Source of the DNA: Epithemia pelagica
Taxonomy: Eukaryota > Protista > Bacillariophyta
DNA length: 64,000 nucleotides
Reading direction: 5' to 3'
Assembly (NCBI GenBank): GCA_946965045.2
Contig: OX337228.1
Coordinates: 186,001 to 250,000 of the forward strand
Made by a program: the position numbers and the translations under genes. Shown piece by piece: positions 8,270-52,685 of this stretch; position 1 is the first letter of the stretch; each line of letters opens with the position of its first letter. The notes under the pieces were generated by a model, which saw only the letters and a program-made list of their open reading frames with translations, ran no database searches and was not told the DNA's origin.

Positions 8270-9451
8270 GATTGAATGGTTTCCGTCTTGTCTCTATTGG
8301 TTGGACTAGTACGAAGAATATCCCACCTTCTTGTTCCATGGAACAAAGCGGTTGTGTGGTTTTGTTTTGTCTCTCCACAAAAAAAGTGTGGCGGCGCGGT
8401 GAGATCGCATGTCCGAGGCGGCACAACTGGAAAATGGCGCGAGCACGTGAGGCGATGTGAGGATTCGGTACACATTTATATATCCGCTCAAAATCTGGAG
8501 ACTCTCACGAATATTATCTGTGGGGAAGGACAAACGGATACGGATAGAGGAAGGAGAGGAGTAGCAAGAGTCCGAGAGATTTCGAATTTGCATGTGCAAG
8601 TACAAGTACCTTCTTCATCGACCCTACTCCAATCAGGTAGATCATCGGAAAGCAACCGCACCACACCTGACGAATGATTGAAGCAGATGGAACAATGTAC
8701 GAACGTAACCCTAACTATCATCTCTCCTCGTGGTATTATGTACGTACATACGAAAGCTGTGAACGCACTTAAAAAAAAGAAAAAGGGAAAGGTGGTCCTT
8801 CGTTTTTGTTTCAAACGGCCAGGAGATTTCTATCCCAAAAGCTGCCGACTTCCATGGTACTCCTACAACTTGAATTCGTGAGGAGTATTTGCATCGGAGC
8901 TTTTTTTTCAAATTTGTTCCACAATGGATGGGTCGTCACTCTTTTCTTGCTCTTTTGTGCATCGTGGACAAGCAACGACCACACACACGCACGTGGTGCA
9001 CACGAAAAGGACGAGAAGTGAGATCAGGAATCTCAGTCTCTCTTTCCCTCGCCTCTTTTCTTCATAAAGTAGTTTCTGTTACACTGTAATAGTCATGAAG
9101 TACTCGAAACGACGACCTATAGAGCTTTTCCATTGAATTTTTGAGTGCCAACGATGTGGAGAGAGAAAAAGGACGCCTCTCGATGGAGCTATACTCCTAT
9201 GAGACAGGATAGCTCCTATGAGACAGGATAGATACCATAGCATACATAGCATATATTTTGCTACCTCTTCTTCATACTCTCTAACGGCTTAAAATAGGTA
9301 TGTACAAAGTTATTCTATAGTCGTTGTCCACCGGCTGGAGGAGGAGTTGCAGCGCACGTTTCAATCTGTCGTCGTCGCTTATCACCATGAACTCATCGAC
9401 GGAGAGAGAGGTTGCTAATTAGTGTCGTGTCATGTTTTCTAGTGTTGTTGC

Positions 9452-10639
9452 GTGCCAGCTAGGATGAGCACGCCATTGGAGGCCAAGTCCGACACGAAAC
9501 CAAACATCCCAATCAAGAAGAAGAAGAACGACAACAAGACGGTGTTGGTGGTGAAACCATTCAAAAAGAAGAAGCAACGTTCCCAGTGGAAACCATCGCG
9601 CTTGATGACACGAACGTCTGTCACGCAACAAACCCAACGATTACTCCTCGAGCAACAACAACAACAAGAACAAGAATCCTCCAAAGTGGAAACCACAGAC
9701 TTGTTTGAGAATGACCACAACAACGACGAGACTGACACTGCCGAAAATGCACTGGCATGGTGCGATACCCTTCAAGTCCTTTATTCCTTGCAACAGCAAT
9801 CCTCCACCACCAACAACAACACCAGCCACAACAACGAATCTTGTTTGCCCATTCCCCTCAAAACCAGTGGACAATATATCTACGCCGTCTTGGACTGTCA
9901 ATTGTATGCCTCGGGCTTGCAAGATTCCATTGTCGCACGAGAACTCTCGGAATTGCAAGCGCAAACCGTTGTGATTCCACTGGGACCGCCTCGTACCAAC
10001 CACGGAAGCAGCAGCAACAATTCGGGACCCACCGTGTGGCTCACGAAACAAGACTATGACCGGGCCGTGCGCGATGCCGTCCAAACTCACTTGGCGGTTC
10101 CTAATGTCACAACCACAACACCCCATCCATTGGACGTTTCGTGGATCCACAGTTGTGTGGAATGGTTTTTAGACACGGTCTTGATAAAACACTGTACTGG
10201 AAATATCATTGCGCACGACGACGAATTGAAACAGGCCTGGAAGACACGAACCACAACAACATCATCATCGTCATCACAAGAAGGGCCCAATCACGCAGAC
10301 AAGAAGGAGCCATCCGTAGACGACGTGATTCAGTTCTTGGTACATTTGAATCTTCTCTTACCCTGTAGTTGGAGTCACGAATCCTATCAAGTCTGGTACC
10401 CCACCTGGCCCTTGGTCTTGCAAACCTGGACGCAAACCTCGCAACGACTGGTCACTCTGCTCAAACAATCCTATTACAAGGAAAAGTCGTTGGTGTCGAT
10501 TCAAAAATCTCTGGGTCAACGCAGCCCCATTCCCATCTTACTCTTGCTGCAATACCTGGAAACTCGAGGCATGGTCAAGACAGTCCACAAACCGTCGGGC
10601 CCCTTTATCCAATTGACGGCCACCGGAGCAGGACGGTAA
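9452..10639 (+). CDS. STK19: STK19-like winged-helix protein
   Basis: C-terminal YQVWYPTWPLVLQTW...LVTLLKQSYYKEKSL...LLQYLETRGMVKTVHKPSGPFIQLT parallels the STK19 family C-terminus as I recall it (W-x-x-x-P...KyrEl...G.v....t.sG..lrL). Not database-verified. Confidence 0.65.
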   Translation: MPARMSTPLEAKSDTKPNIPIKKKKNDNKTVLVVKPFKKKKQRSQWKPSRLMTRTSVTQQTQRLLLEQQQQQEQESSKVETTDLFENDHNNDETDTAENALAWCDTLQVLYSLQQQSSTTNNNTSHNNESCLPIPLKTSGQYIYAVLDCQLYASGLQDSIVARELSELQAQTVVIPLGPPRTNHGSSSNNSGPTVWLTKQDYDRAVRDAVQTHLAVPNVTTTTPHPLDVSWIHSCVEWFLDTVLIKHCTGNIIAHDDELKQAWKTRTTTTSSSSSQEGPNHADKKEPSVDDVIQFLVHLNLLLPCSWSHESYQVWYPTWPLVLQTWTQTSQRLVTLLKQSYYKEKSLVSIQKSLGQRSPIPILLLLQYLETRGMVKTVHKPSGPFIQLTATGAGR

Positions 10640-19873: not shown

Positions 19874-23794
<3,921 letters not shown>

Positions 23795-23957
23795 AGGATG
23801 CATCGTACGAGCAAGCAATCTGTGGAAATGAGAATACATGATTAGTTAACCAAAATACGTAGTTCTATTATTAGTATCTATGCATCTACGATGTCAATAC
23901 CGTAGCAGTGGACGGGCAGCAGCACCCAATGCAGCGTGGCCGAGTCCTTGTGACCTA

Positions 23958-24121
23958 CAAGTTGCAACTTAGTTGGTACGACAAGTTGCAACTTAGTTGG
24001 TGATTTGCAACTACAAGTTGCAACTTAGTTGGTGCGACAAGTTGCAACTTAGTTGGTGATTCGTAACTTCAGGTTGCAACTTAGTTGGTGATTCGTAACT
24101 ACAGGTTGCAACTTAGTTGGT
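23958..24121. repeat. Minisatellite: 6 copies of CA[AG]GTTGCAACTTAGTTGGT with 4- or 12-nt linkers
   Basis: Copies start at 23958, 23982, 24014, 24038, 24070 and 24102 (periods 24/32/24/32/32). The core AAGTTGCAACTT is a perfect 12-bp palindrome. Confidence 0.95.
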
Positions 24122-24197
24122 GATTCGTACTACATTGCATCTAAAGTTGGATCAATTGATCAAAAAGAAAAATTTACTAAGGTATTATACTCCCGTT

Positions 24198-24896
24198 CTA
24201 TAAGTTTAGTTTCTTCACTGCGATCATGTTGGAATCAAGAAGGTTGTCCTTGTTTTCCATGTGGCCACAAAGTTTCCCGTTGACCAGTTTCAACAGTGTT
24301 GTGGCTCCGACAACACTCATCTTCACAGTGACAACCATAGGTTCCATTGTTATCACTGTGTTAAGTGAGTGGGTTGTCGGGATGGCAATCCTGCTCTTAA
24401 TGACTTTACCACTGTTTGAGCGAAGAATCACACCCTCCAGCTGATTGTTGATGTACTCGAGTGGGATCACCATCTCCGGAACCGAATCGTCCATTTTAGA
24501 ACGATCAAAGAGGCGAATTGAAAATGCGTTTGGGCTCAATTGAGACAAAAAGGTTCGCTGAAGAAGAAGAACACCACGGTCAACAATCAACCGACCATCG
24601 CCTTCATCCTTTTCTCCACCAGCCGACCTGAGATATGCATTCACCCCCGACTCACCAAAGACCGTCACCGTCTCACCCTTGGTGTCGAGCTTCTGCCCAC
24701 CATCACATATAATTGTGAACCCATTTGCAAGTTGCATGGTCTCAAATTTCTTGCTGGTTGTAAGCTGTGCCATTGTTCGGGATGACGGATTTGTTTGAGC
24801 TTTGCAGAAGTGTGAGTGAGGAAGATCTCTGCAACACAGTTGGATTGCCACTTCATTCTTACTTACAATTCTTGCCTGCAATGGGAGAACAAACAA
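24198..24896 (-). CDS. Hypothetical protein inside the transposon (cargo ORF A)
   Basis: 232-aa ORF of normal complexity (possible start MAQLTTSKK), converging on the transposase 3' end; no family recognised. Confidence 0.5.
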   Translation of the reverse strand: MFVLPLQARIVSKNEVAIQLCCRDLPHSHFCKAQTNPSSRTMAQLTTSKKFETMQLANGFTIICDGGQKLDTKGETVTVFGESGVNAYLRSAGGEKDEGDGRLIVDRGVLLLQRTFLSQLSPNAFSIRLFDRSKMDDSVPEMVIPLEYINNQLEGVILRSNSGKVIKSRIAIPTTHSLNTVITMEPMVVTVKMSVVGATTLLKLVNGKLCGHMENKDNLLDSNMIAVKKLNL

Positions 24897-25078
24897 TGTA
24901 TCTATCGAGAAGCACAGTATTGCTGACTATCTATCTGTCGGGACGAGGCACAGTATTGCTGGATCCTATTCTTGTTCTTTGATGGCGGTCGTCTTGAGGT
25001 CGAATTATAGATTTGTGAGCGCACGGACTACTTTTTCGTGCCAAGCGTTCTTGTGGCGCGCCCTATTTACTATTTAAT

Positions 25079-25795
25079 TTGGAGGGCTGGCGTGAATTCG
25101 GAACCTATTGCAACAGACACGACCCGTCAGCCTCATCTTTTTCATGTTTGCAAAGGGAGAAACCAACAACAGCGTCAACAACAACAACGACAAACGACAA
25201 AAGTAACATGTCGACAATCATCAACGGCCGTCGTGTCAGTCTTCGGAACCAACAACGCATCAAAGTGGCCTTGGATGCGGATTCAGCATTGCCACCAAGC
25301 CTTCCCCTCAATCAAGTTCCCAGCTCTGTTTCCAAAGAAAAGTCGTCGCGAAAGATGAGGACAGCAAGCAAGAAAGCATCTACAGCAAAGAATCCCAAGA
25401 TCAAGATGGAAAGGGATGCGGTTGAAGTGAAAGTTGAGGAAGAGCAGAAGGTTCCCATTGTCAAGGAAGAAGCCCATGCCAAGGTTGTGGACAAGAAGAC
25501 GCATGTGTTTGTTCTCTCAGAAAAGAAGGTTGCATCTCCACCTCCTTTTGATACCATGATTGTGCAATTCATGGAGAGTAAGGAACAATACAACAATAAA
25601 AAGTGTTCTCCCGGTACAAATATCCTGGAACTCGAATGCAACAGTTCTGACAAAGACGACACTTTGACCACCAACAGCAACAATCCAATGGGCAAATTTG
25701 GGAACAAGCGCAATTCGTCCATAGGCGTGGACAGCAACCTATCCTTCGAGTTTGCTGAGACCCAGGAACCGTGCATTCACTACAAGTTTGATTAA
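25079..25795 (+). CDS. Lys/Glu-rich hypothetical protein inside the transposon (cargo ORF B)
   Basis: 238-aa ORF (likely ATG at MSTIINGRR) with basic NLS-like runs; it stops just before the right inverted end. Confidence 0.45.
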   Translation: MEGWREFGTYCNRHDPSASSFSCLQREKPTTASTTTTTNDKSNMSTIINGRRVSLRNQQRIKVALDADSALPPSLPLNQVPSSVSKEKSSRKMRTASKKASTAKNPKIKMERDAVEVKVEEEQKVPIVKEEAHAKVVDKKTHVFVLSEKKVASPPPFDTMIVQFMESKEQYNNKKCSPGTNILELECNSSDKDDTLTTNSNNPMGKFGNKRNSSIGVDSNLSFEFAETQEPCIHYKFD

Positions 25796-26224
25796 TCGGA
25801 GATAACTAGTCTAAAAGGAGAGTTTTATATATTGTGCCCACATGTGCCCACTATGTCCCCACAAGTGCCCACCAACTCAACAAGCCTCCGATTGAGGCAC
25901 TCCTATGACTATCATATGTCATAGGTAGTGCAAATGGGGCATCAAATGGTGACAGAGGATGACTTAGAGATTGGGAAGACGCATCAGATCATGGTTGTAG
26001 GGCTAATATTGATCGAGTTCTATCTATTTGAAATATTGTTCCCAACGGTACGTTTTCGTCCGTCATGGGCACACCCGGAGTGGAGGCACTAGTAGCGGGG
26101 GTGTTTTTGAGGTTGTAATTTCGTTGAAACACCCCCATCTCTCTGGTGGAAAAATAACTACCCCCAAGCAGGGGTGAATAGTCGGGTCGCAGATGTGTCG
26201 TGAATTCGAGGTGCAAGTCTTATT

Positions 26225-27167
26225 CACCCCCACGGCGCGAGGGTCCAAAATTGGCGATTTCTCGACTTTGCCACAAACCACAAAAACACACCACACATTC
26301 ACCACGGAGCCAATCTTGAGAGTGTCATAACATCACCCATGAACGTTCAATCCTTCACCCAAGATGACCAACATGTCTCCCTTACCCCACCGGACCATCG
26401 TGAACCTGCGGTTGCCTCCGAAACCCGCCGCAACGAGTCTCTCCATGGTCTGCATACCACCACCAAGAACAACCATACCAACGAGACAGATGACCATCCT
26501 TTCCATCCATCCATGCAAGCTCTCCTTTTGATCCAACCATCCGCAAGTCTCCCTTGCACCTCCACAGACCAAATGAAAGCTTTGCATTCGCTCGAAACCA
26601 TAATCAACCAGACTCGTGCTTGGGGATTGTCTATTTGTTTGCTTATCACCATCTATGTCATAAACTATGGTTGATTGTTGTGTTGTTGTCTTCGTCTTTG
26701 GGGAAGCTAGATGCAACAAACGAGAGGTGATTGCTGTGTGATCTTGGTGCTTCGTATCTTTGAGCTTAATTTGTGTCTTATCATTGTTGTGTGTGGAGAG
26801 CGAAGACCCCAATGTTGTTGTTGCCATGGGATAAAGATAGGCCGATGAAATCAATGAAGGAAGGAGAGAAAGGAAGAGGGGAAACATCGTCGATACCTGA
26901 AAGAAAGGAATAATGGGTGAGAAGAAGGTTGTTTTGGGCGATGCTTCTGTTGCTGCCTACCATGGACCTTGGTAAGCCAATGTCAACCTTTCCGCACCAC
27001 CATCGAGTCATACAGTCCACATGCGCCTTGTTTTGGATGATGGTGGCCTTTGGGCAGTGAAGATGGGCCATGGACGATCGCATCACCTCCAGTGCCGTGG
27101 TGAATGCGCGGAGTGGTTGCGAGGTTTGTGTCAAAGTCGAGAGCGGAAGGGACGCGCCGTGGGGGTG
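26225..27167. mobile_element. Non-autonomous element (943 bp) with inverted ends CACCCCCACGGCGCG...CTCGACTTTG.CACAAACC
   Basis: 26225-26280 and 27121-27167 are inverted homologs: a perfect terminal 15-mer plus an 18/19 internal match. No convincing ORF inside. Confidence 0.75.
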
Positions 27168-27212
27168 AGAAAGAGTTTGCACACCAGAATCGAATCACTA
27201 AACCTCATGACT

Positions 27213-27833
27213 CACCCCCGCTGGGGGGTAGAAAAATAACCTGTAGGCATATCTCATTCCATCCATCGCGATAACAACACGGACCTCGGTGTTGCACCTG
27301 TTGTTGTGCACCTATTTTGACACTTGGTACCTGTCGGGCGAGTCATGGGCCTCTAACCAATAGCGTAGGATACATCTGCATGGCCAAAATATGAAGGTTG
27401 AGTCTATTGTGGAGCTGGTTTACAGGCACCATGCCTCGTGGCACGGTCATACGGAAGCAAGGCCTCACCATTTCGAACGAAGCATCTCAGAGGGATGTAT
27501 GGCTCTTATCATTCATTGTTTCGACACCTAATGGTACACAATATACATAACAGTAGTATCGGAGTGTATCGACAGCAGGACCTCTATTCCCATGTGTTTT
27601 TGGGGCCATCATGGTCTCGTGTCGTGTCATAATGCTGGGCCACTATTTTCATCCTTGCCTAGAGTGACCCTCATGCACTGTGCCGCTCACAATGCACTAC
27701 CATGGTACTAATATGAATTACACGATGGTCGGATGATGATGGGGTGGCCATAGGAGGTCACCAGCAACAACAAAGTTTGATTGTCGTGTTGGAGGAAATG
27801 AAATATGCCGACCCTCTAGAAGAGAAGGGGGTG
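27213..27833. mobile_element. CACCCC...GGGGTG-bounded module (621 bp), related to the 47-bp module at 26130-26176
   Basis: Left end CACCCCCGCTGGGGGGTAG resembles the reverse complement of 26158-26176. The right end read inward (CACCCCCTTCTCT) resembles 26130 CACCCCCATCTCT. Confidence 0.55.
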
Positions 27834-28062
27834 GCTACACGAAATTAAACCGTCTTAGCCACCACCGCTGGGGGCTGGGAGAGCCCCCCACGCACACACA
27901 CACACACCCAATCGCTAGGCATATTCGGCATTTTGGGAGCAAGGAGCCAGAGGCCACACACACAACGCACACTGTGCGTGGTTGTAGTAGATAGACACCA
28001 ACCTTCAGCAAACGTTGGAGGTTGAGCCTTGCGATCCGACTGGCACAAGAACAACTGCCATT

Positions 28063-28431
28063 ATGAGCGAAGCAAGTAGGGCAAAACGCAAGCGAGAAGA
28101 AGATAACCCAGGCGACGGCGAGGTGGAGGAGATGGCAAAGAAACAGAAACTCTATCAAGAGCTTTGGAGCGAGGCACAGACACGGGGGTTGCTCACTAGT
28201 GAGATTCGTGGTGTCCTTGACGACATAAAAGATCTACATTGCAAAATATATACATTGCGCGAGAAAATAGAAACGGATCGAATAAAAGCCGCATATGCAG
28301 TAAAAGATGAGGAACTGAAAGGTTTCTCTCACACATACAACATACAACCGACACACATGTATCTTCTACCTGTATTGATGCTTTGGAATTTCAAAGCCTC
28401 CGTGAGGAGCCACTCACAAAATTACAATTGA
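28063..28431 (+). CDS. Small basic/coiled-coil hypothetical protein
   Basis: MSEASRAKRKREEDNPGDGEVEEMAKKQKLYQELW... has NLS-like clusters; the 3' end is uncertain because it runs into the paralog's upstream region. Confidence 0.35.
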   Translation: MSEASRAKRKREEDNPGDGEVEEMAKKQKLYQELWSEAQTRGLLTSEIRGVLDDIKDLHCKIYTLREKIETDRIKAAYAVKDEELKGFSHTYNIQPTHMYLLPVLMLWNFKASVRSHSQNYN

Positions 28432-28459
28432 TCTCATAACAACAAAAAGATTGAAAATC

Positions 28460-29159
28460 ATGACCAAGGTTGACACTACTGATACGGAAATGGCCCCAAT
28501 CACCACGATGGAGAAAGAGCGCACGGGTGCTGGTGGACGTCAATCCTTTTGGACTGTCAAAACAATCTTGATTGCTTCCGTGGCAAGTCTCTTGTCTCTC
28601 GGTGCAGCCAGTGCCTTTTTCTTTTTGGGTCGTGAGGTCGACACGTGCGGTACCGACAGTATTGAAATGGATCCACCCGAATCAGGCAGATGAAGGCAAG
28701 GAGCATTTGGACAACTGGATTGAGGAGATTCTCGCAAACAGCAACCACCATGATCATGACAAGGGTGACCGCATCTTGTTTACCAGCACTGGCAATCAGG
28801 GCTGTTCGACCTTTGAGAATGGCGCATAATTTTGCCTGGACAATCCGTACGTAAGCCGCCGGCGAGTGTCGGCGGGGAGGAACCGCTGTTTGCCCCGTAG
28901 TCGATTCGATTCCTATGCCCGCGATACGTTTGCTCCTGCCACGAAAGACGCTCATGAGAATTGGGGCGTTTCGGGTTGGGCCAGTCACGGATATCAGGCC
29001 ATTTGTTGGGCCAAGACGATTCGCACGAATCTGGAAAATGTGCAAGGTTCTTCGTCCTCCTGTGTCCGAGAGGCCACTGCCACAGTCACGACTGAGTTGA
29101 GCTGTTATGCCGCCCCTACGAGTGCAGCTCGTGGTTGGGACTCCTACATTCCTCCGTAA
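28460..29159 (+). pseudogene. Disrupted paralog of the 15340 membrane-protein gene
   Basis: MTKVDTTDTEMAP...DTCGTDSIEMDPPES aligns to 15340. There is a frameshifting deletion at ~28686 and an in-frame TAA at 28827-29. Flanks also match (28371-28460 vs 15249-15340; ~29225-29375 vs ~16030-16165). Confidence 0.8.
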
Positions 29160-30118
29160 GGTGGTTGTCCTTTTTGCGCGGCACAATCTATTTGTGAAAT
29201 GACTGCGCAAGTCGGCGTACGACATCCCTGCACGTATTGCAAGCGCGGAGAATGTGACTAGCTACTCCCACACAGAACGTACCATCAACCTTCTCCTGAG
29301 ATGATGTACGAATGGACAAACTCCATGAATCAAAAACTTGTGTGTGTTGTGTTGCGTGAAACTTAGGAACGATCATAGTATAATTGACCATATAAAACAA
29401 GAAACTATATATTAGTGGGGTTTTTTATAACGGCAAAGGTCGCTCTCTAGAGTACAGAAACAGAGAAAGAGAGCAGGCGAGATCCCTCGAATGTTCAACG
29501 TTTTCTACCTGTTGCACGGGCGATGTCAAGGCAGTGTCGTCCCTCTGGTGCTCGTAGTGGCATACCAAAGGGAGACGCACTGGGAATTTTCCTTCTGCTC
29601 GTTGGCATTCCCGAGGGAGGCGCACTTGGTTCGTTTCGCTTTGCGCTGTTTGTCCCAACCAGCATCTTTTCCACTCGGTTCGGTATGGGCAATACTACAG
29701 TGTTGGTTGAGCCGAGTCATAACCTTCCCCAAGAGAAATCCCCCGAGAAACGCCCCAAAAGGCACTCTCTACTACGGGGACGGAGACTGACTGTACCGCA
29801 GTGTGTATGTCACGTTTTTTTGGTTTTTTTGTCGAGAGAGAGCTTTTCCACACCAAGAACCAAGGAAGAGAGACTGTGGTTGTGCTCGATCCATTGATCG
29901 ACTGCAACAAGGAGAAAGCGAGAGAAAGAGTTGCAACGACTCGGAAATTTTTATTGGGGACTGCAGTATATTCGGAGAGAGAGTTTGGTTTCACATTCTT
30001 GTCGTCACAAAAACACCACCAGAACCACCACCAACACAACAACAACAACAACAGCGAGAGTTGAGTTTCCATTCATTCATTGATTTGATTCGAATCATCG
30101 CAACAATCACCGGCAATC

Positions 30119-31690
30119 ATGGCCTCCCATTTTCCGGCGCATACAACAAGTCGACAACCCAATCATCGACCCACCATGAATGGATTGGGTCCCACTCGCA
30201 CACCGTCCTCCAATTCCTTGCTGACCAGCCATAATTCACAACAGCAACAACCAGTAAAGTCCAAGATGGAAAAAATTGCCGAATTGGAAGCCACGCTCAA
30301 AGTGTCCAAGGAAGAAAATCGACGATTGAAAAAACAAGTGCATTCGCTGAAACGCGGAAGCAATAACACCAACAATAACAACCATGTCCCGGAGAATCAA
30401 AATACTCCGTTTCCCCACTGGCCCTCGTCGCAACCATCCACCAATGGGACCAGTCGTCGACCATCGGGATCGTCTCAAGTCACCATGGCCACAACGGCCT
30501 CGTCCATGACCTCGGCCACGACCGACACGACTACGACAATGACGACCGATGTGGCCAAAATGAAGGATGCCCTCAAAGCCTTGAAACGTGTCACCATTCA
30601 ACAAGAATTGAGTTTGCAATCGCTGCGAACCAAGGCCTCGCAACGACGCAGTGAATTGGAAGCACGAGATTTGACCATTGCCAAATTGCAAAAACAAATT
30701 GCCGTCCTCCGGAGGGCCAATGGGAGCAACAACAACCCAAACAGCAACAACAGCAACAATAGCAACAGTGCCGACGTGATTCGTCGATTGCAAGATGGAT
30801 TGATGGATGAAGAAAGCAAAAATGTCGAATTGACCGAACGCTTGCAACAAACCGAAGCCAAGGTCAAGAGTTTGGAACAACAAGTGGACTTCATGTCGGG
30901 GGGTGGAAATGCCAGTGCATCGTCCTTACCGGTACCACCCTCCCCCATGCGCATGACACCCGTCTTTAAACGAGAATCCTCCTTGTCCAGTCTCAAATCC
31001 ACCTTGCAACAACAACAACAACAACAAGCCGCACCCCTGGCGGGTGGAGGGGGAGTGACTACGAATAGTGACACGCAAAGTGTCACGTCGGGCAGTGCCA
31101 CGACCCTGTCCTCCGAATTTGATGTCTCCAAACTCAAAAAGGAATTGGCCCGCAAATCCAATCGTATTGTCCAATTGGAATACGAATTGGAAGAAACCAA
31201 GGATGAATTGCATCAAGTCAAACAACAATTGATGCGACAACGACACAAACAATCCCAACCGCCATCGTCACGGCCAGGCAAACCTACCAAGTCTGCCCAG
31301 AACGAAGCCACGGCGGCCTTTCACAATAGCAGTAGCAGCATGAATCAACAGTTTCTGCACAACAGCCATACCAGCAACAACCATCCCAACAACAACTTTT
31401 CCAGCAGCAACAGCAACCACAATCACAACTCGGCCAACAGCAACAATAGCAACAACAGCAACAATAACAATAGTCTCAACTTTTTTGAGGCGGACTTTTC
31501 CAACATGACGGCCAGTGGACATGGCAGCACGCCCTTTCTTGCCGGTGTCGATCCCTTTCACGGCAAATCGCTTTGGGCCATTCGATCCTTTGACGATGAT
31601 GACGACGATGATGACCATTATCCTTCTCTTCACGACGACGACGAGTCGTCAGACTATCCAGACGATCAGGAAGACGAAGCGGACTGGTGA
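30119..31690 (+). CDS. Coiled-coil protein with low-complexity N/Q/S tracts and an acidic tail
   Basis: 523-aa ORF with three heptad-rich segments (e.g. MEKIAELEATLKVSKEENRRLKKQV); no specific family recognised. Confidence 0.75.
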   Translation: MASHFPAHTTSRQPNHRPTMNGLGPTRTPSSNSLLTSHNSQQQQPVKSKMEKIAELEATLKVSKEENRRLKKQVHSLKRGSNNTNNNNHVPENQNTPFPHWPSSQPSTNGTSRRPSGSSQVTMATTASSMTSATTDTTTTMTTDVAKMKDALKALKRVTIQQELSLQSLRTKASQRRSELEARDLTIAKLQKQIAVLRRANGSNNNPNSNNSNNSNSADVIRRLQDGLMDEESKNVELTERLQQTEAKVKSLEQQVDFMSGGGNASASSLPVPPSPMRMTPVFKRESSLSSLKSTLQQQQQQQAAPLAGGGGVTTNSDTQSVTSGSATTLSSEFDVSKLKKELARKSNRIVQLEYELEETKDELHQVKQQLMRQRHKQSQPPSSRPGKPTKSAQNEATAAFHNSSSSMNQQFLHNSHTSNNHPNNNFSSSNSNHNHNSANSNNSNNSNNNNSLNFFEADFSNMTASGHGSTPFLAGVDPFHGKSLWAIRSFDDDDDDDDHYPSLHDDDESSDYPDDQEDEADW

Positions 31691-32305
31691 AAGAATGGGA
31701 CGCGACCATGACAACAAAAGGACACTACCCCGCACACCCATGCTCTCATTGGATTGGAGCCCTTTGGCGATTTGGTGTTACTCGGATTCGGTCCTTCTGG
31801 CGATTGCTGTTGCTTCGGCAACGGTTCCTCTCTCGATGAAACACGACAATTTTTTCTCCGGACTATTTCTGTCGGAGAGCAATCATTCCTGCCACAGAAA
31901 AACGGGTGGGATCGCTTGGTGTGTTGGGAACACACACGAGAGAAGAGTGTGAATGGAACCAAACACACAGTTAGTCAACATCAAGAATGAGTCTTGTTGT
32001 GGAAACAGCTCATTTTTTGGAATCCCGAGAAGAAGAGAGTTGGAACAAAACGAGATACGTTTCGCATGGGTGAGATAAACTTCTAGAACGCCATCATTTT
32101 AAAACAGATAAAGGAATGGTTGGCTCAACTACATACAAAACATGGATAGAAGACACCGTGATTCCAACTAAGGATCCTAAAACTAAACTGTCGTAGGTAT
32201 GCGTTTGTACGAATGGTGTGTGTGTGTTTGCTTCCTCTACTATACTACCACCACCAGGGGTGTTGTCGGTATCACGAGGACAACGACGACAAGACGTATC
32301 AGTCC

Positions 32306-34715
32306 TTACTTCTTGTCGCCATCGTCCTTCTTCTTGTCGTCGTCTTCCTTCTTTTCTTCAAAGTCGGCATCGACCGTGCTATCATCCTTCTTTTTGTCTT
32401 CTCCTCCTTCGGGAGGTGCGTCACCGTCTTGTTGTTGATTTTGTTGTTCCTGTTGTTGTTGTCCATAAATGGCTTGTCCAATCTTTTGTGCCGCTTCATC
32501 CAAGGCTTGTTTCTTGGCTTGCAATTCGTCCAAGGTGGCTTCGGTATTGTCCTTGACGGTTCGGGCTTCGGTCACGGCCGTTTCAATCGCCGTCTTGATC
32601 TCGTCATCCAACTTGTCGGCATTGTCCTTGACGGATTTTTCCGTACTGTAAATAAGATTGTCAATGTCATTGCGGGCTTCAATAATTTGACGACGTTGGG
32701 CATCGGCTTCGGCATTGGCTTCGGCATCGCGGACCATTTGTTCAATGTCATCTTCGGACAAACCGCCACTGGACTTGATGACAATGTTTTGTTCCTTACC
32801 GGTACCCTTGTCTTTGGCACTAACATTGAGAATGCCATCGGCATCAATGTCAAAGGAGACTTCAATTTGCGGGGTTCCCCGCGGTGCAGGCGGAATACCC
32901 ACCAAATCAAATTGTCCAAGCAACTTGTTGTCGGCCGCCATGTCACGTTCGCCTTGCATAACCTTGATTTGGACTTGGGGTTGATTGTCGGCCGCCGTCG
33001 AAAAGGTTTGTTGTTTCTTGGTGGGAATGGTGGTATTGCGGGGAATGAGTTTGGTCATGACACCACCCAAGGTTTCAATGCCCAAGGAAAGGGGCGTGAC
33101 ATCGAGCAACAAGATATCCTTGACATCGCCCTTGAGGACACCGCCTTGAATGGCGGCTCCCATGGCCACCACTTCATCGGGATTGACCCCACGCGAGGGT
33201 TTCTTGCCAAAAAACTTTTCCACCGTTTGTTGCACCAAGGGCATGCGGGTCATTCCACCCACCAAAATCACCTCGTGCAAATCACTCTTGCTCACATCGG
33301 CATCCTTCATGCAATTCTGTTCAAAGAGAATTCCAAAAGTACACACACACACACAAGAGTTTTTGTTGGGTTGAGATTCCGCCAGCAGTCACAAGTTTTC
33401 TTCTCCCCTGGTTCGCTCCGACGACGATTCACCGATTCACACACACATCATACAAACGCACAAACGTACCTTGCAGGGATCAATGGTTCGATCAATGAGT
33501 TTTTGCACCATTTGTTCAAATTGGGCCCGCGAGACTTTGGCATTCATGTGTTTGGGACCACTGGCATCGGCCGTAATAAAGGGCAAACTGACATCGGTTT
33601 GGGCCAAACCGTCCAATTCGCGCTTGGCCTTTTCAGCCGCTTCCCGCAACCGTTGCATGGCCAACTTGTCCCCACTCAAATCGAGACCGGATTCTTTTTT
33701 GAAATCGCCCAGCAAGTATTCCAACAATTCCTCGTCAAAATCTTCGCCGCCCAACATGGTATCGCCATTGGTGGCCTTGACTTCAAAGACGCCGCCTTGA
33801 ATTTCCAACACCGAGACATCAAAGGTGCCACCGCCCAAATCAAAGACGACAATGGTCTTGCCATCGGCCTTGTCCAATCCGTACGCGAGCGACGCCGCCG
33901 TGGGTTCATTGATAATGCGCAAAACATCCAAACCGGCAATTTTGCCCGCATCCTTGGTCGCTTGACGTTGCGAATCGTTAAAATAGGCCGGCACCGTCAC
34001 GACCGCCTTGCCGACGGTTCGTCCCAAGAAGGTTTCGGCCGTTTCCTTCATTTTGGTCAAGACCATGCTCCCAATTTGACTGGGACTGTACTTTTCGCCC
34101 CGCACTTGGACCCAGGCATCGTCGTTATTGTCCGACTTGCAAATTTCGTACGGTACCAAATTGGCAATATTCTTGACTTCGGGATCGGCAAAGCGACGGC
34201 CAATCAAACGCTTGACGGCATAGAGGGTATTTTCTGGATTGGTCACGGCCTGACGACGGGCCGCCATGCCCACCAGTCGTTCGCCGCCTTCGACAAAGCC
34301 CACCACGGACGGTGTCGTACGAGCACCTTCCGAGTTTTCAATCACGCGCGGATTGCGGCCTTCCTATGAGTATGTATTAGTAGTAGAAGGGGACAAGGAC
34401 AACAACACGATGAACAGCACACACAAAAAAGACACTTGCGTGTGAGACCACCACCCACTCGATCCAATCCAATCAAATCCAATCACAACCAACCACACTA
34501 CAATCCAACACAATACAAAGCAAGCAACGTACCATGATGGCGACACACGAGTTGGTCGTTCCCAAATCAATGCCAATCACATCTTCGGTCGGTGCCGACG
34601 ACGATTGAAATCTCAGGGCGCCCAACGGGGCCGGAGTTTGTGAAACGGACAGTCGAGAGGACGACGCCAAGAAGCGTCGTCCCAATGTTTTGGAAGCAGT
34701 AGTCAGGGGCAACAT
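32306..34715 (-). CDS. HSP70: Mitochondrial HSP70 (DnaK-type); exons 34715-34533, 34363-33470, 33316-32306 (695 aa)
   Basis: [43 protein letters not shown] and [16 protein letters not shown] signatures; Arg/Ser-rich presequence ending LRFQSS. Both introns are GTACGT..AG, phase 0. Confidence 0.97.
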
Positions 34716-38243: not shown

Positions 38244-38851
38244 CAGCAACTTCCGGTAATGGACTCAAAACGTACGAAATCTTTCTACTTCTCAGAGTAT
38301 CGTCGCGATAAAACACCCGTTTTCATATTGCGTTATCACACACCAAAAGCTCTGATATGATCATATTGGATACAGATTCTTTCGATATGAGGCAAGCATC
38401 CCGAGTCACGGATGTCGGGGGACATTGTAGATGTCGTTTATGTCTTTTGATGTCGTTTGATGTCGTTTGATGTTTTTATCGCCAAAAGAATCTCTACTCT
38501 CCAGCAGTTCGTATTATTCAACAGAAAAAACACGACTGACTGACGTTAGGCCCATGGCGAAAGACATTTCAAAAGGCCCATATGAGCACCGCTTGATTTT
38601 GACTCAAACCATGTTTCCGCGCGAACCCGAAACGACATCAAACGACATCAAGCGACATCCCTCACGACATCAAACGACATCCCTCACAACATTCCCGTTT
38701 GTTCCATACTAGAGATTGGAAAACCATCCTCTATGGTTTCATAATACGTATTTTGTATTAATATCGATCCGTTGTCGAAGAAGTTCTTGGTCTTATCCAC
38801 TGGGTATTGCTAGCGGATACGGGACTCAAGGGTACTTACCGGAAGTTGCAG
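38244..38851. mobile_element. Putative foldback/non-autonomous DNA element with GATGTCGTTT inverted arrays
   Basis: Perfect 14-bp inverted repeat GCAACTTCCGGTAA (38246-59 / 38836-49). Tandem GATGTCGTTT units at ~38430-38465 face AAACGACATC units at ~38630-38690. Confidence 0.55.
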
Positions 38852-42324: not shown

Positions 42325-45027
42325 ATGGATCACAACAGCACCCTTGGCACTTCGTCTTCTTCCAATCCTAACACGGCCACCATGAATCATCATAAGGGGG
42401 ACGTTGACGATGTGGAAATGCCCGACTTGGCGCATACCGTCACACCCATATCCTCGACGGCACCGGCTCCCACACCCGCCCTGGTTCCTCCGCCCCTTGC
42501 CGCCGACTCCACAACAACCACAACGACGACCGATCTGACGGCAACCGCAGCGGCGGCCGCCAGTTTTTTGGCTCCCACCACCACCATGGCTGCCACGGCG
42601 CACCAAGTGACCTCCTCGTCCTCGTCGGCCCCTCCTGCCAACACTAACAACAATAATAATATGGTCCTGGCCATGCCGGCTGCCGATTCCATGGACTTTT
42701 CGGCTCTCAAGGAATCCATGGATGCCGCCTTGGCCGCCATTGGAACGACCCCAACGACAGCAACAGCAGCCACGCCAACAAACACTGCACCGCCCCCCAC
42801 GACTGCTCCAACGACCACTACAACAACACGCGCCGAAGACGAAAAGCAAGCGCAACTCCGTGCCATGTATTTGGCCGGCTTCAAGGCCGCTCAAGAACGG
42901 GCCGCTCAACAATTGCAACAGCAATTGCAACAACAACAACAACAATTGGCGGGTGGTACAGCCGTCGTGACCAATCCCCTGCAACAGTCGTTGCAACAAA
43001 ATTTTGAATCGGCTCAAAAACAACAACAAACATTGTCGCAACGATCCGTCTCGTCCTCCTCCTTGGCAGCCCAAACCGGAACCACCAGCAATGGTGCCAC
43101 CCTTTCCTCGCCCTTGATTTTGCCCACCTTGGCCAGTTCAGCACCGGCTTCCACCACTACCAATATGTCTGCGGCACCCGCTCCCGCCAGTTTGCTGCAT
43201 CGTCATCATTCAGCGGCTGGAAGCAATGTGTCGTTGGTCCCCTTGGGGGGAGGAGCTGGTGTGGCAGCTAGAGTCATCAAGGTGGTGCCTCCCTTGGCCC
43301 TGTCCGCAGCCACAACGACGACAGCAACAAGTACTGGTTCCACGCCAGCCCCAGCATCTTCGCCCTTGCTGGTACCCGCAACATCGTCCGCGTCACCGTT
43401 GAGTACGCATACCATGACGACTCGTCGCATTACGCGCACCAGTTCGTCCGGGACGACGAGTAGTCCCTACAATTCTCCCGCATTGACCAGTGTCAATGCG
43501 GCAACCACAACAACGACGGGGTCTCCCGTCACGACACCCAATTCTTCGTCTGGCGGAAGCACTTCCAGTGGTGGATCCAATCCCTTTCCCCGCAAATTAA
43601 TGGACATGTTGCAAAAAGAAGACACGTCCATTGTCGCTTGGTTACCCGCTGGCGATGCCTTTTTTGTCCGCGATGTGGATCGCTTTGTCGCTGACATATT
43701 GCCCCGGTATTTTCGACATACCAAATTGACCTCCTTTCAACGACAATTAAACTTGTATGGCTTTCGACGCATTACCAAAGGGCCCGATTCCGGTGCCTAT
43801 CGACACGAATTGTTTCATCGCGATCATCCCGATTGTTGTTTGCAAATGAAACGGACCAAACAAAAAAATGCCGGCGCCTCGCCCATTCTCAAAGCCAGTC
43901 CCCGGTCCACACCACTGTTGGGAGGAGCGGCCACGACGCCGGGCAGTGTCGCCAGTGTTCCATTGGAATCCCCCACGGCCTATACCCTGGAACAAAGTGC
44001 CTTGCCAGCAGCGGCGCTGGCCACTGGCAACACTGCCACCCAATCCTTGAGTAGCAGTATGGCAACACGGTATGTCTATCATTGAAGGAATGGAGAATGA
44101 GCTTTTGTTGGCTAGATTATTTTTCTCACCGATTGCCTCTTGTATTTTCTTTGTTTCCTCTATGAATGATTTGATGGACTGGTATTATCAATAAGATCTG
44201 CCACACTGATACCTCCTCCTGAGCGACATGCCAATCTCCGCAACAATACTACTGGTGCAGGAGATGCCATGATGTTGGATGCCACACAAGCCACGGTGGC
44301 CCTGAATGGTGGCGTCTTTGCTGCTTCCACTCCAACTGCACCTACGGGATTGTCCATGCTGCAACAACAAGCCCAAGCAACTCCCTCGCAACAACAGCCT
44401 CCTGCTTCGTTTGCGTCCTTGTCGGGAATGACAACGACCAACAACACTACCAACGCCAAACCATCGGCTGCCTATCAAGAAGAACGAGAACGACAAGCAC
44501 GGGCCTTGGCCGCGGCAGGAATGATTGCCGAAACGGTAGGCACACCCCAAGGTGCCGTGACTGCGGCTGCAACCTTTGCCGCGGCAGCCTTGCAACCACC
44601 CCCCGCCTTGTTGGGACCGCCCGCCACCCTAGCGGGTAGCACGACGACGACAGCAACAACAGCTGTTCCTACGAGCACGACGACGACGACACCTCAAGTA
44701 CCGGCAACTGCTGGCACATCCACACCAATGGAAGGCTTCTTTTTGGATGCCAGTGTGACGGGAACTCCTGTGGACGGTAGCAGTACAACGACTGCGGCGT
44801 TGGCAGCCGCCGCAGCAGCTGCGGCTGTTGTGGATACCACCAGTGTCGATGATTTGGACATTGATTTTGCCACCCTCTTTGATCCAGCCTTTGAAGAATC
44901 GCACGTGACGACGACGGAAGCCAAATCCTTGGCCAGTCCACCTCCCCTCAACAACAGCAGCAACAACAACAACAACAACAGCACGGTGCCCTCCTCCGAA
45001 CCACCAATACAGGGAACCGCCGTGTAA
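42325..45027 (+). CDS. HSF: Heat-shock-factor (HSF) DNA-binding-domain transcription factor; exons 42325-44069, 44196-45027
   Basis: [10 protein letters not shown]...[13 protein letters not shown]...[21 protein letters not shown] is the HSF DBD. The GTATGT donor at 44070 and the AG at 44194-95 join the 44269 ORF in frame. Acidic-aromatic tail [15 protein letters not shown]. Confidence 0.92.
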
Positions 45028-45487
45028 GAAGAGGGGGTATCGTATCATGTGGGTGTTGTGGGTATGAGGGAAGTGTGTGTTTCTGTAAGGGGATTGTGTG
45101 TGGGTATTTGTGTCACTGTGCGGCTGCTGCTGTGGTCCTATATACTATACGACGACGAGGGGTAATGATTTGCATAGAACTGAAGAAGAAGAAGAATCCT
45201 ACAGGGAACTGTGTGTGTACATAATTTCAAAACTGTTACTTTCACTTCAACAAAAACTGGAGTGTGTGTAGGGTTCCATCCATAGGCCCTTTCTCTCAGT
45301 TCGATCCTTTCTAGTAGTGTTTCCTCCAGCGTGAGAACGACCAACTATACTTATACCCGTACATCGTCCTATTCTAGAATCATCATGGATGCGCGGTTTG
45401 GAACAGAACCACGGCATCGATGGTTTTGGCGTCGCTTTGTTCCTCTAGAGAGAGTAGGAGTAGATAGAGGATCTACTCTATATAGGT

Positions 45488-45680
45488 AGTAAGACTACTT
45501 CACGGTGTTTCAGTCCTTTAGAGGAGGGTCGCCCGGCGCGGAGGGTAGAATGACGAGGAGGGCATATGTTCGAGGAGGGCGCATGCCCGACAAGACATAT
45601 GCCCGTCAAGTCATTCTCCCGACAAGCCGGGCGCCCGACGAGGAAGGAATGAGAAAACACAGGGGAGTAATCTGCTTACT
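45488..45680. other. ~190-bp foldback with four periodic non-complementary internal loops
   Basis: Left arm GAGGA-GGG-Y-N8 with period 17 (45521, 38, 55, 72); right arm CCC-GACAA with period 16 (45586, 602, 618, 634). The N8 spacers are reverse complements across the axis. Confidence 0.85.
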
Positions 45681-46087
45681 TTATATCTAGATGTGTAGGT
45701 AGTGACTACCGCCCGGTTTTATTAGGAGTTGGGATGTCGCAACGACATAATTTTCCTTACACGGTTCACCCATGATGTCGCGCGATTCGCACGATTACTA
45801 CTTCCCGGCTCTACAATAAATTCCAACTGTAGTATAAAAAAGTGAGACGAACTACCTGCATAGCTAGGTATAGAGTTAGCAAATAGGATAGCTAGCAAAA
45901 AGTTTGTCTTTCGGATTTTGGATCCACAAAAAAGTGGAAAATACGCACCGGTTTTGGATTTTGGCAGTTTGTCAGATGCCAATGTCGACCATGGGAACCA
46001 CTGATACAATGACTCCTCTGCTGGATCTCTAGTAGAATGAAGGATTGACTGTCCGTGGGTGTATCTGTGTGTGACCAACATCCGAGA

Positions 46088-47548
46088 ATGATGACCGCAC
46101 CAACCAGCAGCACAACCACAAACGTGTCACACTCCCCCCAACCAAAAGGACCACCACGACGAAACAACAACAACAAAAGGAATCTCCGCAGGAATCCTCC
46201 CTTCTGGCACGACGGTCTTCTTGTTGTGATTGGCATGGCATGCCTGTGCTGCTGGTGCAATCCTCTGCTCCACGGATCCCATGCGTTCTTGTTCTCGTCG
46301 TCGTCGTCGTTTTCTTCTTTTTCTTCTTCTCATGGTTCGTTGGCATGTCGTCGTCGTCTCAACCATGGGATCGTCCACGGAGAAGCAGGCTCCCAAACAA
46401 CAACAACAAGACAACGAAGAAGAAGAATACGAAACGAGGACTGTTCTCCCTTGTGGTTTCATACGGCAACGACAGTTCCAATTCCTACGACAACGTGTGA
46501 CCTCTTTCGTGACGACCAGCATGACGACAAGTCCAACAAGAAGCATCCATTCATCTCTTCCTCCAATTATAATGATGAGGGAGCAGCAAACCGTCCCGCC
46601 CAGGATCAACGCCTCGTGTTGCTGGAACAACCCGTTGTATCCTTGTCATCGGAAGAAATAACCTCCATGGCGACCTTTGTGGTGCAAGAATTGGGATGGT
46701 TGTGGCTCCGCAAGCGACAACAACAACAACAATTGCAACCACTCAATGATACCGGTTGGAGGGATCTACGGCCATGGTCCAATCAGACCCTCTTGAATCC
46801 AGAACAGGAGGAGACTGTGCGGCAACCACCACCAAGAAGAATGACAAGAAGGAATGGAACAACTCCTTCTCCCATGGCATCCACCCATGACCGAGACACT
46901 CCTACGACGATTCCTGCATGGGATTCGTCGGAGTGGATGACGGCACCTCCTCCCAGTGCTGCCATGCTGCAGGCCCCCGAAGTGACCGAGGCTCACTGGA
47001 CGGCCGACTGGTTGCACTGTACCATTTTCTTGGCACCCGCCACCAAAAAGGGAGCCCGGTTGGGCAAACAATGGACGTCGAAGAAAAAACAAAGTATTCC
47101 CATGGTCTATGTGCCAACGCAAGAAGAACGGCGCTTTCATCGAGCCATGCGACGTCACATCTTTCCGACCCCACCAAAGAACAACCACAACGACAACCCG
47201 CAATCGATTTCTCCTCCTCCTCCTCCTCCCACACCCTTGTTCGCTCCCCATCAACCCTTGCACGTGAGTCTCACCTTTCGGTATCGTCGTCCCAATGGCC
47301 ATTATGTGCAGTCCAATCGGAGTTTGCCCCTGAAACCACAGTATTACCAGTCGTCGGGAAAACAGGATCCCAGTATGGGAGGCGATGTCGACAATTTGGC
47401 CAAAATGGTCTTGGATGCCATGAAACAATTGGCCTATGTCGATGATCGACAAGTCGTATCCCTCACCTCCACCAAAACATGGGCCGACCAGGCTGAGAGT
47501 GTGGGAAGTACCACCGTCGTCATTTGGGCCTTGTCCTCGTTGTCGTAA
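46088..47548 (+). CDS. RusA-like Holliday-junction resolvase domain protein with possible bipartite (plastid) leader
   Basis: C-terminal GDVDNLAKMVLDAMKQLAYVDDRQVVSLTSTK matches the RusA DxDNxxK...D...DD motif. The N-terminus has a hydrophobic stretch ending SHA-F followed by a Ser-rich tract. Confidence 0.75.
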   Translation: MMTAPTSSTTTNVSHSPQPKGPPRRNNNNKRNLRRNPPFWHDGLLVVIGMACLCCWCNPLLHGSHAFLFSSSSSFSSFSSSHGSLACRRRLNHGIVHGEAGSQTTTTRQRRRRIRNEDCSPLWFHTATTVPIPTTTCDLFRDDQHDDKSNKKHPFISSSNYNDEGAANRPAQDQRLVLLEQPVVSLSSEEITSMATFVVQELGWLWLRKRQQQQQLQPLNDTGWRDLRPWSNQTLLNPEQEETVRQPPPRRMTRRNGTTPSPMASTHDRDTPTTIPAWDSSEWMTAPPPSAAMLQAPEVTEAHWTADWLHCTIFLAPATKKGARLGKQWTSKKKQSIPMVYVPTQEERRFHRAMRRHIFPTPPKNNHNDNPQSISPPPPPPTPLFAPHQPLHVSLTFRYRRPNGHYVQSNRSLPLKPQYYQSSGKQDPSMGGDVDNLAKMVLDAMKQLAYVDDRQVVSLTSTKTWADQAESVGSTTVVIWALSSLS

Positions 47549-48109
47549 CCGTGGATCGAGAATCGAGAGAGAAGCATTACAATCGAGCAATACCGTTCAG
47601 GTCGACGAACTCCATACATGACATTTCTACAAACGCAACAAGTCTCACGGATTTACTCAACGACATGCGTTTGTGGTATTCCAAAACCTCACATTCTCAC
47701 AAACGACAAGGAACGAAACGGTAAAGGACCGACCGTAGACAACTCGTTGGCGTTGCATCCAGCAACACAGCGTTGCCGTTGAATCATTATGGACCGGAAT
47801 GCAAACCCATGCTGGAGAATTGGAATCCAGTGAAACGACGACGACGACGATAACGGGATGGGTGGGACAAAGTACCACAAAATCACCGTATCCTCTCAAC
47901 ATGAACAATTTCGGTACAATACCTTTCTAACTCCCTATACAGCATGTCCAACAGCGAGTTTTCCCTCCCAAGCCTATTCGCTTCTGCGTCTCAAGTGGAC
48001 AATCTAGCTAGCGAACGTTATTACAATAGGTCCTATGATGTTGTTGTGGTTTCCACAGAGTTGGGTTTTGGTGGTTTGACGGTTGTTGTTGCTGTTTTGT
48101 CTAGAGTTA

Positions 48110-52182: not shown

Positions 52183-52685
52183 AAATTGGTGCTGTAGAGC
52201 TACCTTAGGTAGTTCAAGGATTCTTCCCGGTTGTACAATAAATTCCTACTGTAGTACAAAATGTAAGACGAGCTAGCCACATAGTCTATTATGGAGCCCT
52301 AGTCTAGTAGTATGGATGTTGTGATTCATCAAACGGCCGTTGTGGCAATCCGACGCGCCATGGCAAAGCGGTAGCGAGGCCAGAGACAATGCCAGGCGGC
52401 AAACAAGACGAGGGCATAGACAATGGCCCCCACCAAGACGAGCACCAAGGTCCATTCGGGGCGATTCCACCACACAGGATGGTCTGGAGAAGAACTGCCA
52501 TTCGAGTCGACGGCCGATTCTTCCTTGTGGCAATTACCACCAAAAAAATCAAAACGATCCATCCCTCCACGTCATCTTCATCGTCTTCGTCATTGTTGTT
52601 ATTGTTGAAGCGACCGGCATTGGTCGTTCCCACAAAGGCCCCGGTAGAACTGCCACAACAGTTACTACGTTGCGAGGCTTTTCGA

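Follow-up and report, generated by a model that had tools for sequence, protein, structure and literature searches.

What does a long, imperfect fold-back with four evenly spaced internal loops do between two genes of a diatom? The stretch of Epithemia pelagica DNA that we analysed (64 kb, hereafter the window) corresponds by exact look-up to ~178-242 kb of contig ctg1325l in ENA assembly ERZ21939226. A sequence-only reading of the window had described the fold-back, with an ORF for an HSF-type DNA-binding protein upstream and one with a RusA domain downstream, and our letter-for-letter reading agrees with it on both the structure and the neighbours. In RNA and DNA folds alike, the structure is a rod hairpin at 45486..45692 with its purine loops on the + strand. 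Its core (45521..45641, +), delimited by direct reading, motif scans and a list of the loops, contains four 5x5 loops in which GNGGA faces GWCRA, spaced 16-17 nt apart, and three 12-bp stems (GGGY+N8). The left loops are GAGGA (45521-25), GCGGA (45538-42), GAGGA (45555-59) and GAGGA (45572-76), and the right loops, also on the + strand, are GACAA (45589-93), GTCAA (45605-09), GACAA (45621-25) and GACGA (45637-41). At the tip of the core, a GGGC/GCCC stem closes the loop GCAT at 45581-84. The GGGY+N8 units of the left arm are complementary to the N8+CCC units of the right arm, and, as had been noticed before, the spacers differ from one another yet pair across the axis: the three N8 stems have mutually different sequences and match at 8/8, 8/8 and 7/8 positions. 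The rod also holds three single-T bulges, and the outer stem AGTAAG/CTTACT is real. Both periodic motifs, left and right, are unique to the hairpin within the 64-kb window, and their observed counts were reached by no shuffle in the motif scans.

In the predicted fold, each 5x5 loop resolves into two 2x2 purine-purine loops (GA/GA or GA/AA) flanking one G-C pair, and purines make up 25 of the 26 loop bases on the + strand. The counterparts of the loops on the - strand are pyrimidine-pyrimidine mismatches. Folding of both strands, which the earlier reading had proposed as a check, gave a very stable rod with the + strand ahead: with RNA parameters, the window rod reaches -108.9 kcal/mol (z -10.4) on the + strand compared to -90.5 (z -7.9) on the - strand. 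A folding scan finds it to be the lowest-energy 220-nt stretch of the 64 kb (-109 compared to a mean of -58, sd 12). Under DNA parameters, the two strands differ little (-49.0 on the + strand vs -44.1 on the - strand), which counts against the strand-specific part of the reading given below.

The hairpin belongs to a larger unit that one haplotype lacks. The second haplotig, ctg1332l (its fetched part is called L123 here), comes from the same assembly and carries allelic versions of the window genes, without exactly a 394-bp stretch: window position 45476 joins 45877, with one base between (window 45366-45476 aligns to L123 17929-17818, and window 45877-45968 to 17816-17716). Base by base, the empty allele reads ...GGATCTAC ATAG CTACTAGGATAGC..., and the filled allele reads ...GGATCTAC TCTAT ATAG, then the element, then CAAATAGGATAGC...; the empty site in L123, ...TCTAC ATAG|CTAC TAGGATAGC, has one TAG only. 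A contig that skips from 45420 to 45877 is also present in three sequencing runs, one per run, at roughly single-copy depth. Over window 45366-47761, the alleles of the window and L123 are strongly divergent, by ~7-10% across the RusA-like gene and its neighbours and by ~18-21% in the intergenic sequence that surrounds the insertion.

Copies elsewhere in the genome, for which the sequence-only reading had proposed a comparison, were found twice. A short chance ORF through the + strand of the hairpin gave one protein match, which led to a copy at L002:9904-10306 that is 90% identical to window 45486-45879; a third copy, at L128:3917-4192, has the same two ends. Both lie on one contig other than that of the window, in unrelated flanks. 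On the left, the flanking DNA of the three copies ends in TAG, GAG and GCA, and the right end is always ...GTTAG. The unit is therefore 45486-45879, and the TAG that adjoins its left end (45483..45485, +), identical to the last three letters of the element, is target sequence. The entire mobile unit (45486..45879, +), as delimited by the empty allele, the other copies and depth, is 394 bp long and non-coding, and runs from GTAGTAAG... to ...GAGTTAG. In protein searches for further copies, the - strand ORF of the hairpin and an ORF across the right terminus gave no match. The target sites of the three copies are ATAG|C, TGAG|A and AGCA|C. No consistent target duplication was found across the flanks of the three copies or relative to the empty allele: a direct repeat, TAG/TAG (3 nt), occurs at the window copy only, and the other copies have GAG/TAG and GCA/TAG. 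The two ends of the element are not complementary to each other, and the sequence with which the right end forms an inverted repeat is located 190 nt into the element.

We also aligned contigs from three runs of the source organism to 43600-48000. Their summed depth, which is not a copy number and which we read only as many contigs carrying the sequence, was 20,000-34,000 over 45511-45657, 7,000-31,000 over 45805-45951, lower between these and ~100-150 in the flanks, with the element at ~100-300x the flanks. The hairpin and the last 83 nt have ~4x the depth of the interior (about 90 nt), which fewer copies carry, as would be expected if those two parts are needed in cis. The right terminus (83 nt, 45797..45879, +) was recognised by this rise in depth and by the points at which contigs of other copies diverge, upstream of 45797 and downstream of 45879; it is common to more copies than the interior and includes an AATAAA at 45815-45820. 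Given the filled and empty haplotigs, the three copies with unrelated flanks and the high summed depth, the stretch is a discrete mobile unit, and its insertion between the HSF and RusA-like genes is recent.

In being small, non-coding, multi-copy, polymorphic between haplotypes and able to fold back, this unit is like a classical MITE. The fold-back of a MITE, however, arises from two terminal inverted repeats accompanied by a fixed target site duplication (TSD), whereas the hairpin here lies wholly in one end. With no terminal inverted repeat (TIR) at its ends and no common duplication in the flanks of the three copies, we rejected a MITE of a DDE transposon. The sequence-only reading had named an ordinary high-copy MITE with TSDs and no transcription as evidence against itself; this applies in part, to the high-copy miniature element, but TIRs and a consistent TSD are lacking.

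Two shorter observations concern the target and the right terminus. The octamer ATAGCTAG in the right end of the element (45860-45867) occurs again in the flank, 9 nt past the end (45888-45895), and CATAGCTA spans the insertion point of the empty allele in L123. This may reflect a target preference for sequence like the element's own end; it was not seen at the other two copies. A solo right terminus of ~80 nt, at ~80% identity, is present at window 52228-52305 and at L123 11320-11381, in the interval that separates a SET-domain gene from the next gene; the near-palindrome CTACCTTAGGTAG (52210-52222) lies just ahead of it. Because both haplotigs carry it, it is older than the insertion at 45486. 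It may be the remnant of an element that lost its hairpin.

The two ends of the element fit together. Directly after the hairpin, and overlapping its outer stem, is the inner arm of an inverted repeat (45675..45703, +), recognised from the repeat itself and from the joined-ends fold; its complementary outer arm is the last 29 nt of the element (45851-45879, +). In full, the inverted repeat spans 34 nt at 79% complementarity, between the post-hairpin arm (from 45675) and 45851-45884. Pairing between the last 29 nt and the 29 nt that follow the hairpin lets the rod grow by ~27 bp when the ends are joined. When the right end is placed before the left end, the predicted helix runs across the joint with paired bases on both sides, and the joined rod has arms of ~125 nt with the joint within the helix. 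For each copy, we compared the gain in folding energy to that from 300 random 35-mers of the same source. With RNA parameters, joining gained -31.0 kcal/mol in the window copy (random -8.7 +/- 3.2) and -27.4 kcal/mol in L002 (random -6.8 +/- 3.3), and none of the 300 controls was as good in either case. With DNA parameters, the gains were -10.7 kcal/mol in the window copy (random -3.1 +/- 2.0; 1/300 as good) and -15.9 kcal/mol in L002 (random -2.8 +/- 1.9; 0/300).

Variation among the copies bears on whether the arms actually meet. In the L002 copy (L002:9960-9980), the third left loop has changed from GAGGA to TTGAC. This sequence matches the facing GTCGA of that copy's right arm through four Watson-Crick pairs plus a T.G wobble, and the GTCAA of the window copy is its exact reverse complement. 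It looks as if the other arm of the hairpin served as the template for a four-base change that closed the loop. The L128 copy has lost 96 nt symmetrically from the interior of its hairpin and another 20 nt internally; the 96-nt deletion corresponds to a joint of 45540 to 45637 that is found in contigs of the sequencing runs, which also contain a joint of 45576 to 45843. The pair 45508-45657 is U-A in the window and A-U in the two other copies. Together with this swap, the TTGAC closure suggests that the arms pair in vivo, and together with the symmetric deletion in L128 it suggests that they meet in vivo. Both the closure and the L128 deletion are damage to old copies, not conservation. Damaged hairpins in old copies comprise the closed loop, a 9-bp duplication and the 96-nt central deletion, and their persistence shows only that the host has no need of them. 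In most copies among the run contigs, position 45608 is G (giving GTCGA), and the base at 45565 is missing in most copies in two of the three runs, a change that would remove the bulge of the third stem. Covariation across the three copies yielded one compensatory pair, a count reached in 177/500 shuffles and not significant; the comparison is uninformative because the copies are too alike (83-91%).

A second purine-looped rod came from a folding scan of L002, at 7796-8007 (212 nt), 1.9 kb upstream of the mini element there. It reaches -145.1 on the + strand (z -15.8) and -118.9 on the - strand. Under RNA parameters the + strand leads by 18-26 kcal/mol in the two rods, and under DNA parameters by only 5 in the window rod. 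The stems of the second rod measure 10-13 bp, and its loops are GA/GA, GA/AA, AA/GA and GAGGA/GAGGA. In a BLAST comparison, the two rods share only a 16-nt match (81%) at their left ends, where the first 16 nt of the second rod resemble the left end of the mini element (GTTGTAAATCTACTT vs GTAGTAAGACTACTT). The second rod is flanked by ORFs at 7232-7792 and 8639-9550, seemingly parts of one large transposase, a setting in which a further small insert is the probable explanation. We did not find the right end of its element, and a purine-rich stretch at L002:8440-8600 folds no better than shuffles. The loop design thus appears to have been kept while the stems changed, in two lineages rather than many. 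That parallel mismatched loops imply selection, as the sequence-only reading had it, is a reasonable inference: the second rod, alike in its loops and unrelated in its stems, speaks for it, and covariation within the family gives it no support.

Scans for the loop pattern gave no match in viral contigs. One match in metagenome contigs was rejected as a chance hit inside a malic-enzyme gene, as were more than 120 matches in prokaryotic genomes, all chance occurrences in GC-rich coding repeats with no facing arm and no similarity to the element. Other kinds of inverted structure also occur in this DNA: the window has inverted decamer arrays, GATGTCGTTT / AAACGACATC, at 38437-38473 and 38630-38690 with a 161-bp spacer, and L131:12270-12560 contains long near-perfect palindromes without purine loops.

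How, then, should the fold-back be read? We consider it probable, at roughly 60%, that it acts in cis as the left-terminal structure of a non-autonomous DNA transposon of 394 bp, mobilised by a putative Crypton-like tyrosine recombinase. We favour a non-autonomous transposon because the unit is small, non-coding, recently mobile and without TIR or TSD, and because the two parts that it retains, and that are most abundant, are a structured left end and a short right end by which this structure is completed. Its parts are not equally firm. A role of the hairpin in cis during transposition is likely, a tyrosine recombinase is the somewhat favoured candidate for the mobilising enzyme, and a single-strand or cruciform DNA substrate is a tentative suggestion. 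One proposal of the sequence-only reading, a new MITE end architecture or a site of single-stranded or cruciform DNA, gains support from the evidence, with the hairpin ending a small, multi-copy and recently mobile element.

In the mechanism that we propose, the rod would be the feature recognised by the transposition enzyme, and what is recognised on it would be the purine-purine loops at their even spacing, in which tandem G.A/A.G and G.A/A.A flank a G-C pair. The loops, predicted to be stable on the + strand only, would point to recognition of one folded DNA strand or of an extruded cruciform. The enzyme would most likely be provided in trans by Crypton-like tyrosine-recombinase elements. 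The element would leave as, or pass via, a form with joined ends, for example an excised circle; the resulting rod, with its arms of ~125 nt, would be the recombination site; and the loops, 16-17 nt apart, would act as repeated contact points and also as a strand mark. More speculatively still, and by analogy, eukaryotic tyrosine-recombinase transposons and their mini passengers might recombine via one folded DNA strand in the manner of attC and CTX sites, with the 250-nt two-end rod as the site and the G.A loops as a multivalent strand-selecting pad. We regard this wider idea as doubtful.

CryptonS elements, which use a tyrosine recombinase, occur in oomycetes and in the diatom Phaeodactylum. 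Like Cryptons, the element has no terminal TIR and no true target duplication and resides in a stramenopile host; a circular joined-ends intermediate is the proposed route; and the target of the window insertion shares the 3-nt TAG with the right end of the element. Published Cryptons are described with short terminal direct repeats and no TIR, TSD or structured ends (PMC3212892, PMC3627910, PMC12130899), the repeats being 4-6 bp long (PMC3212892, PMC12130899), whereas in the mini element a purine-looped hairpin of 200 nt takes up about half the length and extends across the joint. Against a Crypton, a short direct repeat of the expected kind is present at the window copy alone. Cryptons are hard to annotate because structural hallmarks are reportedly lacking, and they are the least understood class of eukaryotic DNA transposon, with no transposition intermediate or recombination site defined (PMC3212892, PMC12130899). 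Our literature search found no report of such purine-looped hairpins.

If the enzyme is a tyrosine recombinase, the best mechanistic analogy is with integron attC sites and the folded attP(+) of CTX phage. Tyrosine recombinases recombine these sites as single-stranded hairpins. The sites are imperfect palindromes in which structure and not sequence is conserved; one strand is the substrate, and unpaired bases set the choice of strand. In our predicted folds, the + strand is favoured with RNA parameters and only slightly with DNA parameters, the stems of the second rod are unrelated and the joint is flanked by paired bases. The bacterial sites differ in being 60-150 nt long and in having extrahelical bases and a central bubble, whereas the rod has periodic G.A loops. 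Folded single-strand recombination is, to our knowledge, so far confined to bacteria, and we know of no eukaryotic case of a folded single-strand substrate for a tyrosine recombinase. If our reading is true, the rod would provide a recognisable signature for annotation and a defined biochemical substrate, and it would hint at the use of folded single strands by eukaryotic recombinases. The window copy would be useful here because its filled and empty alleles are both available base for base.

No autonomous copy and no tyrosine recombinase was found in the ~230 kb of Epithemia pelagica DNA that we examined. Contig ctg1287l, examined over 91-168 kb, yielded the third mini copy but no autonomous element and no tyrosine recombinase, and the loci around other copies of the piggyBac-like gene of the window contain no rods. 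An ORF for a Ulp1/C48 peptidase (L133:2857-3201, Pfam E 4e-16) lies in a transposon-rich region 30 kb away from the L002 copies, with no rod or recombinase beside it; some published Cryptons carry a gene for this peptidase.

A different enzyme could produce a similar element. HUH/Rep-type elements have strand-specific terminal hairpins, no TSD and asymmetric inverted repeats, and the fold-back might be the end of a non-autonomous single-strand transposon of this kind, Helitron2-like or IS200/IS605-like for example. The strand-biased hairpin, the lack of a TSD and of a terminal TIR, and an inverted repeat with one arm terminal and the other internal would all fit. Helitron2 (Helentron) elements are described with a 5'-end hairpin, asymmetric terminal inverted repeats and compensatory changes; their terminal and subterminal arms compete with the hairpin, and a TSD is absent in most families (PMC3627910). 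Their hairpins are short (10-30 nt), however, and the geometry of their arms is the reverse of that seen here: in Helitron2 the terminal arm is 5' and a 3' hairpin comes after the 3' arm, whereas in our element the terminal arm is 3' and the internal arm follows a 5' hairpin of 200 nt. Helitron2 also needs the 3' hairpin and T-rich targets and has a Rep-helicase partner. The sole 3' stem of our element is 5 bp long and is broken in L002, and its targets are not T-rich dinucleotides: there is no T-T or A-T target and no conserved left-flank tetranucleotide (ATAG, TGAG, AGCA). On the grounds of hairpin length, arm order and targets, we rejected membership of Helitron2/Helentron. The ends of IS200/IS605 and REP/REPIN sequences (Y1 HUH) are also miniature non-coding hairpin DNA recognised on one strand, with no TSD (PMC3116915 for REPINs), but they are bacterial, have hairpins of ~20-40 nt and use a fixed flanking target tetranucleotide. 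Replitrons, for their part, are undetected in diatoms (PMC10288648). Taken together, we consider an HUH/Rep-type origin unlikely. Far less probable, to the point of being negligible, is a host site working with the RusA-like resolvase or the HSF gene, as a cruciform substrate or a regulatory element. The link to the RusA-like gene had been raised before, and adjacency is what favours it. The other haplotype has the RusA-like gene and no hairpin, and the other copies adjoin unrelated DNA, so the link is incidental.

Tandem G.A pairs are common protein-binding motifs in RNA; sheared tandem pairs occur in RNA internal loops and in the NC stem of kink-turns, and are also stable in DNA. Every loop of the rod has 5'-GA/3'-AG pairs on the + strand, and the rod could act as RNA, either as a noncoding RNA with four protein-binding G.A modules or as a small-RNA hairpin precursor that silences the transposon family. 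The great stability of the + strand fold (-108.9, z -10.4) would suit such a role, as would the AATAAA near the right end on the same strand. The multivalent structured ncRNA of the sequence-only reading is nevertheless unsupported: Rfam returned nothing relevant at E up to 10, and among the listed runs that hold the stretch, in all cases as contigs, none is an RNA run. A kink-turn needs an asymmetric 3-nt bulge, and the loops here are not kink-turns because they are symmetric (2x2, G-C, 2x2); with the Rfam result, this led us to reject a kink-turn or any other described RNA family. The locus is also dispensable, being absent from the other haplotype, and the pairing spans joined DNA ends, which is impossible for a linear transcript of one copy. 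An RNA role is thus quite improbable. It is also conceivable that the rod is a palindromic part of the transposon with no role in movement. Long perfect palindromes are unstable, and regular mismatches might keep this one imperfect and let it survive replication and repair; the existence of copies with central deletions (the 96 nt of L128 and the joints 45540 to 45637 and 45576 to 45843) is in keeping with this. Yet any mismatches would serve, and 25/26 loop bases are purines on one strand; another rod, whose stems are unrelated, has the same GA/GA and GA/AA loops; and the mini element keeps its hairpin, which is the part with the highest copy number. We therefore give this explanation, too, a low probability compared to that of a cis-acting transposon end.

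Sequence from the element is also present outside the source organism's own runs. A marine metagenome run, X4, contains low-depth contigs with the hairpin and interior (window 45485-45821), in pieces that each have one differing letter, plus 4 gaps in the second piece. From this near-identity, Epithemia pelagica or a close relative occurs in that marine sample.
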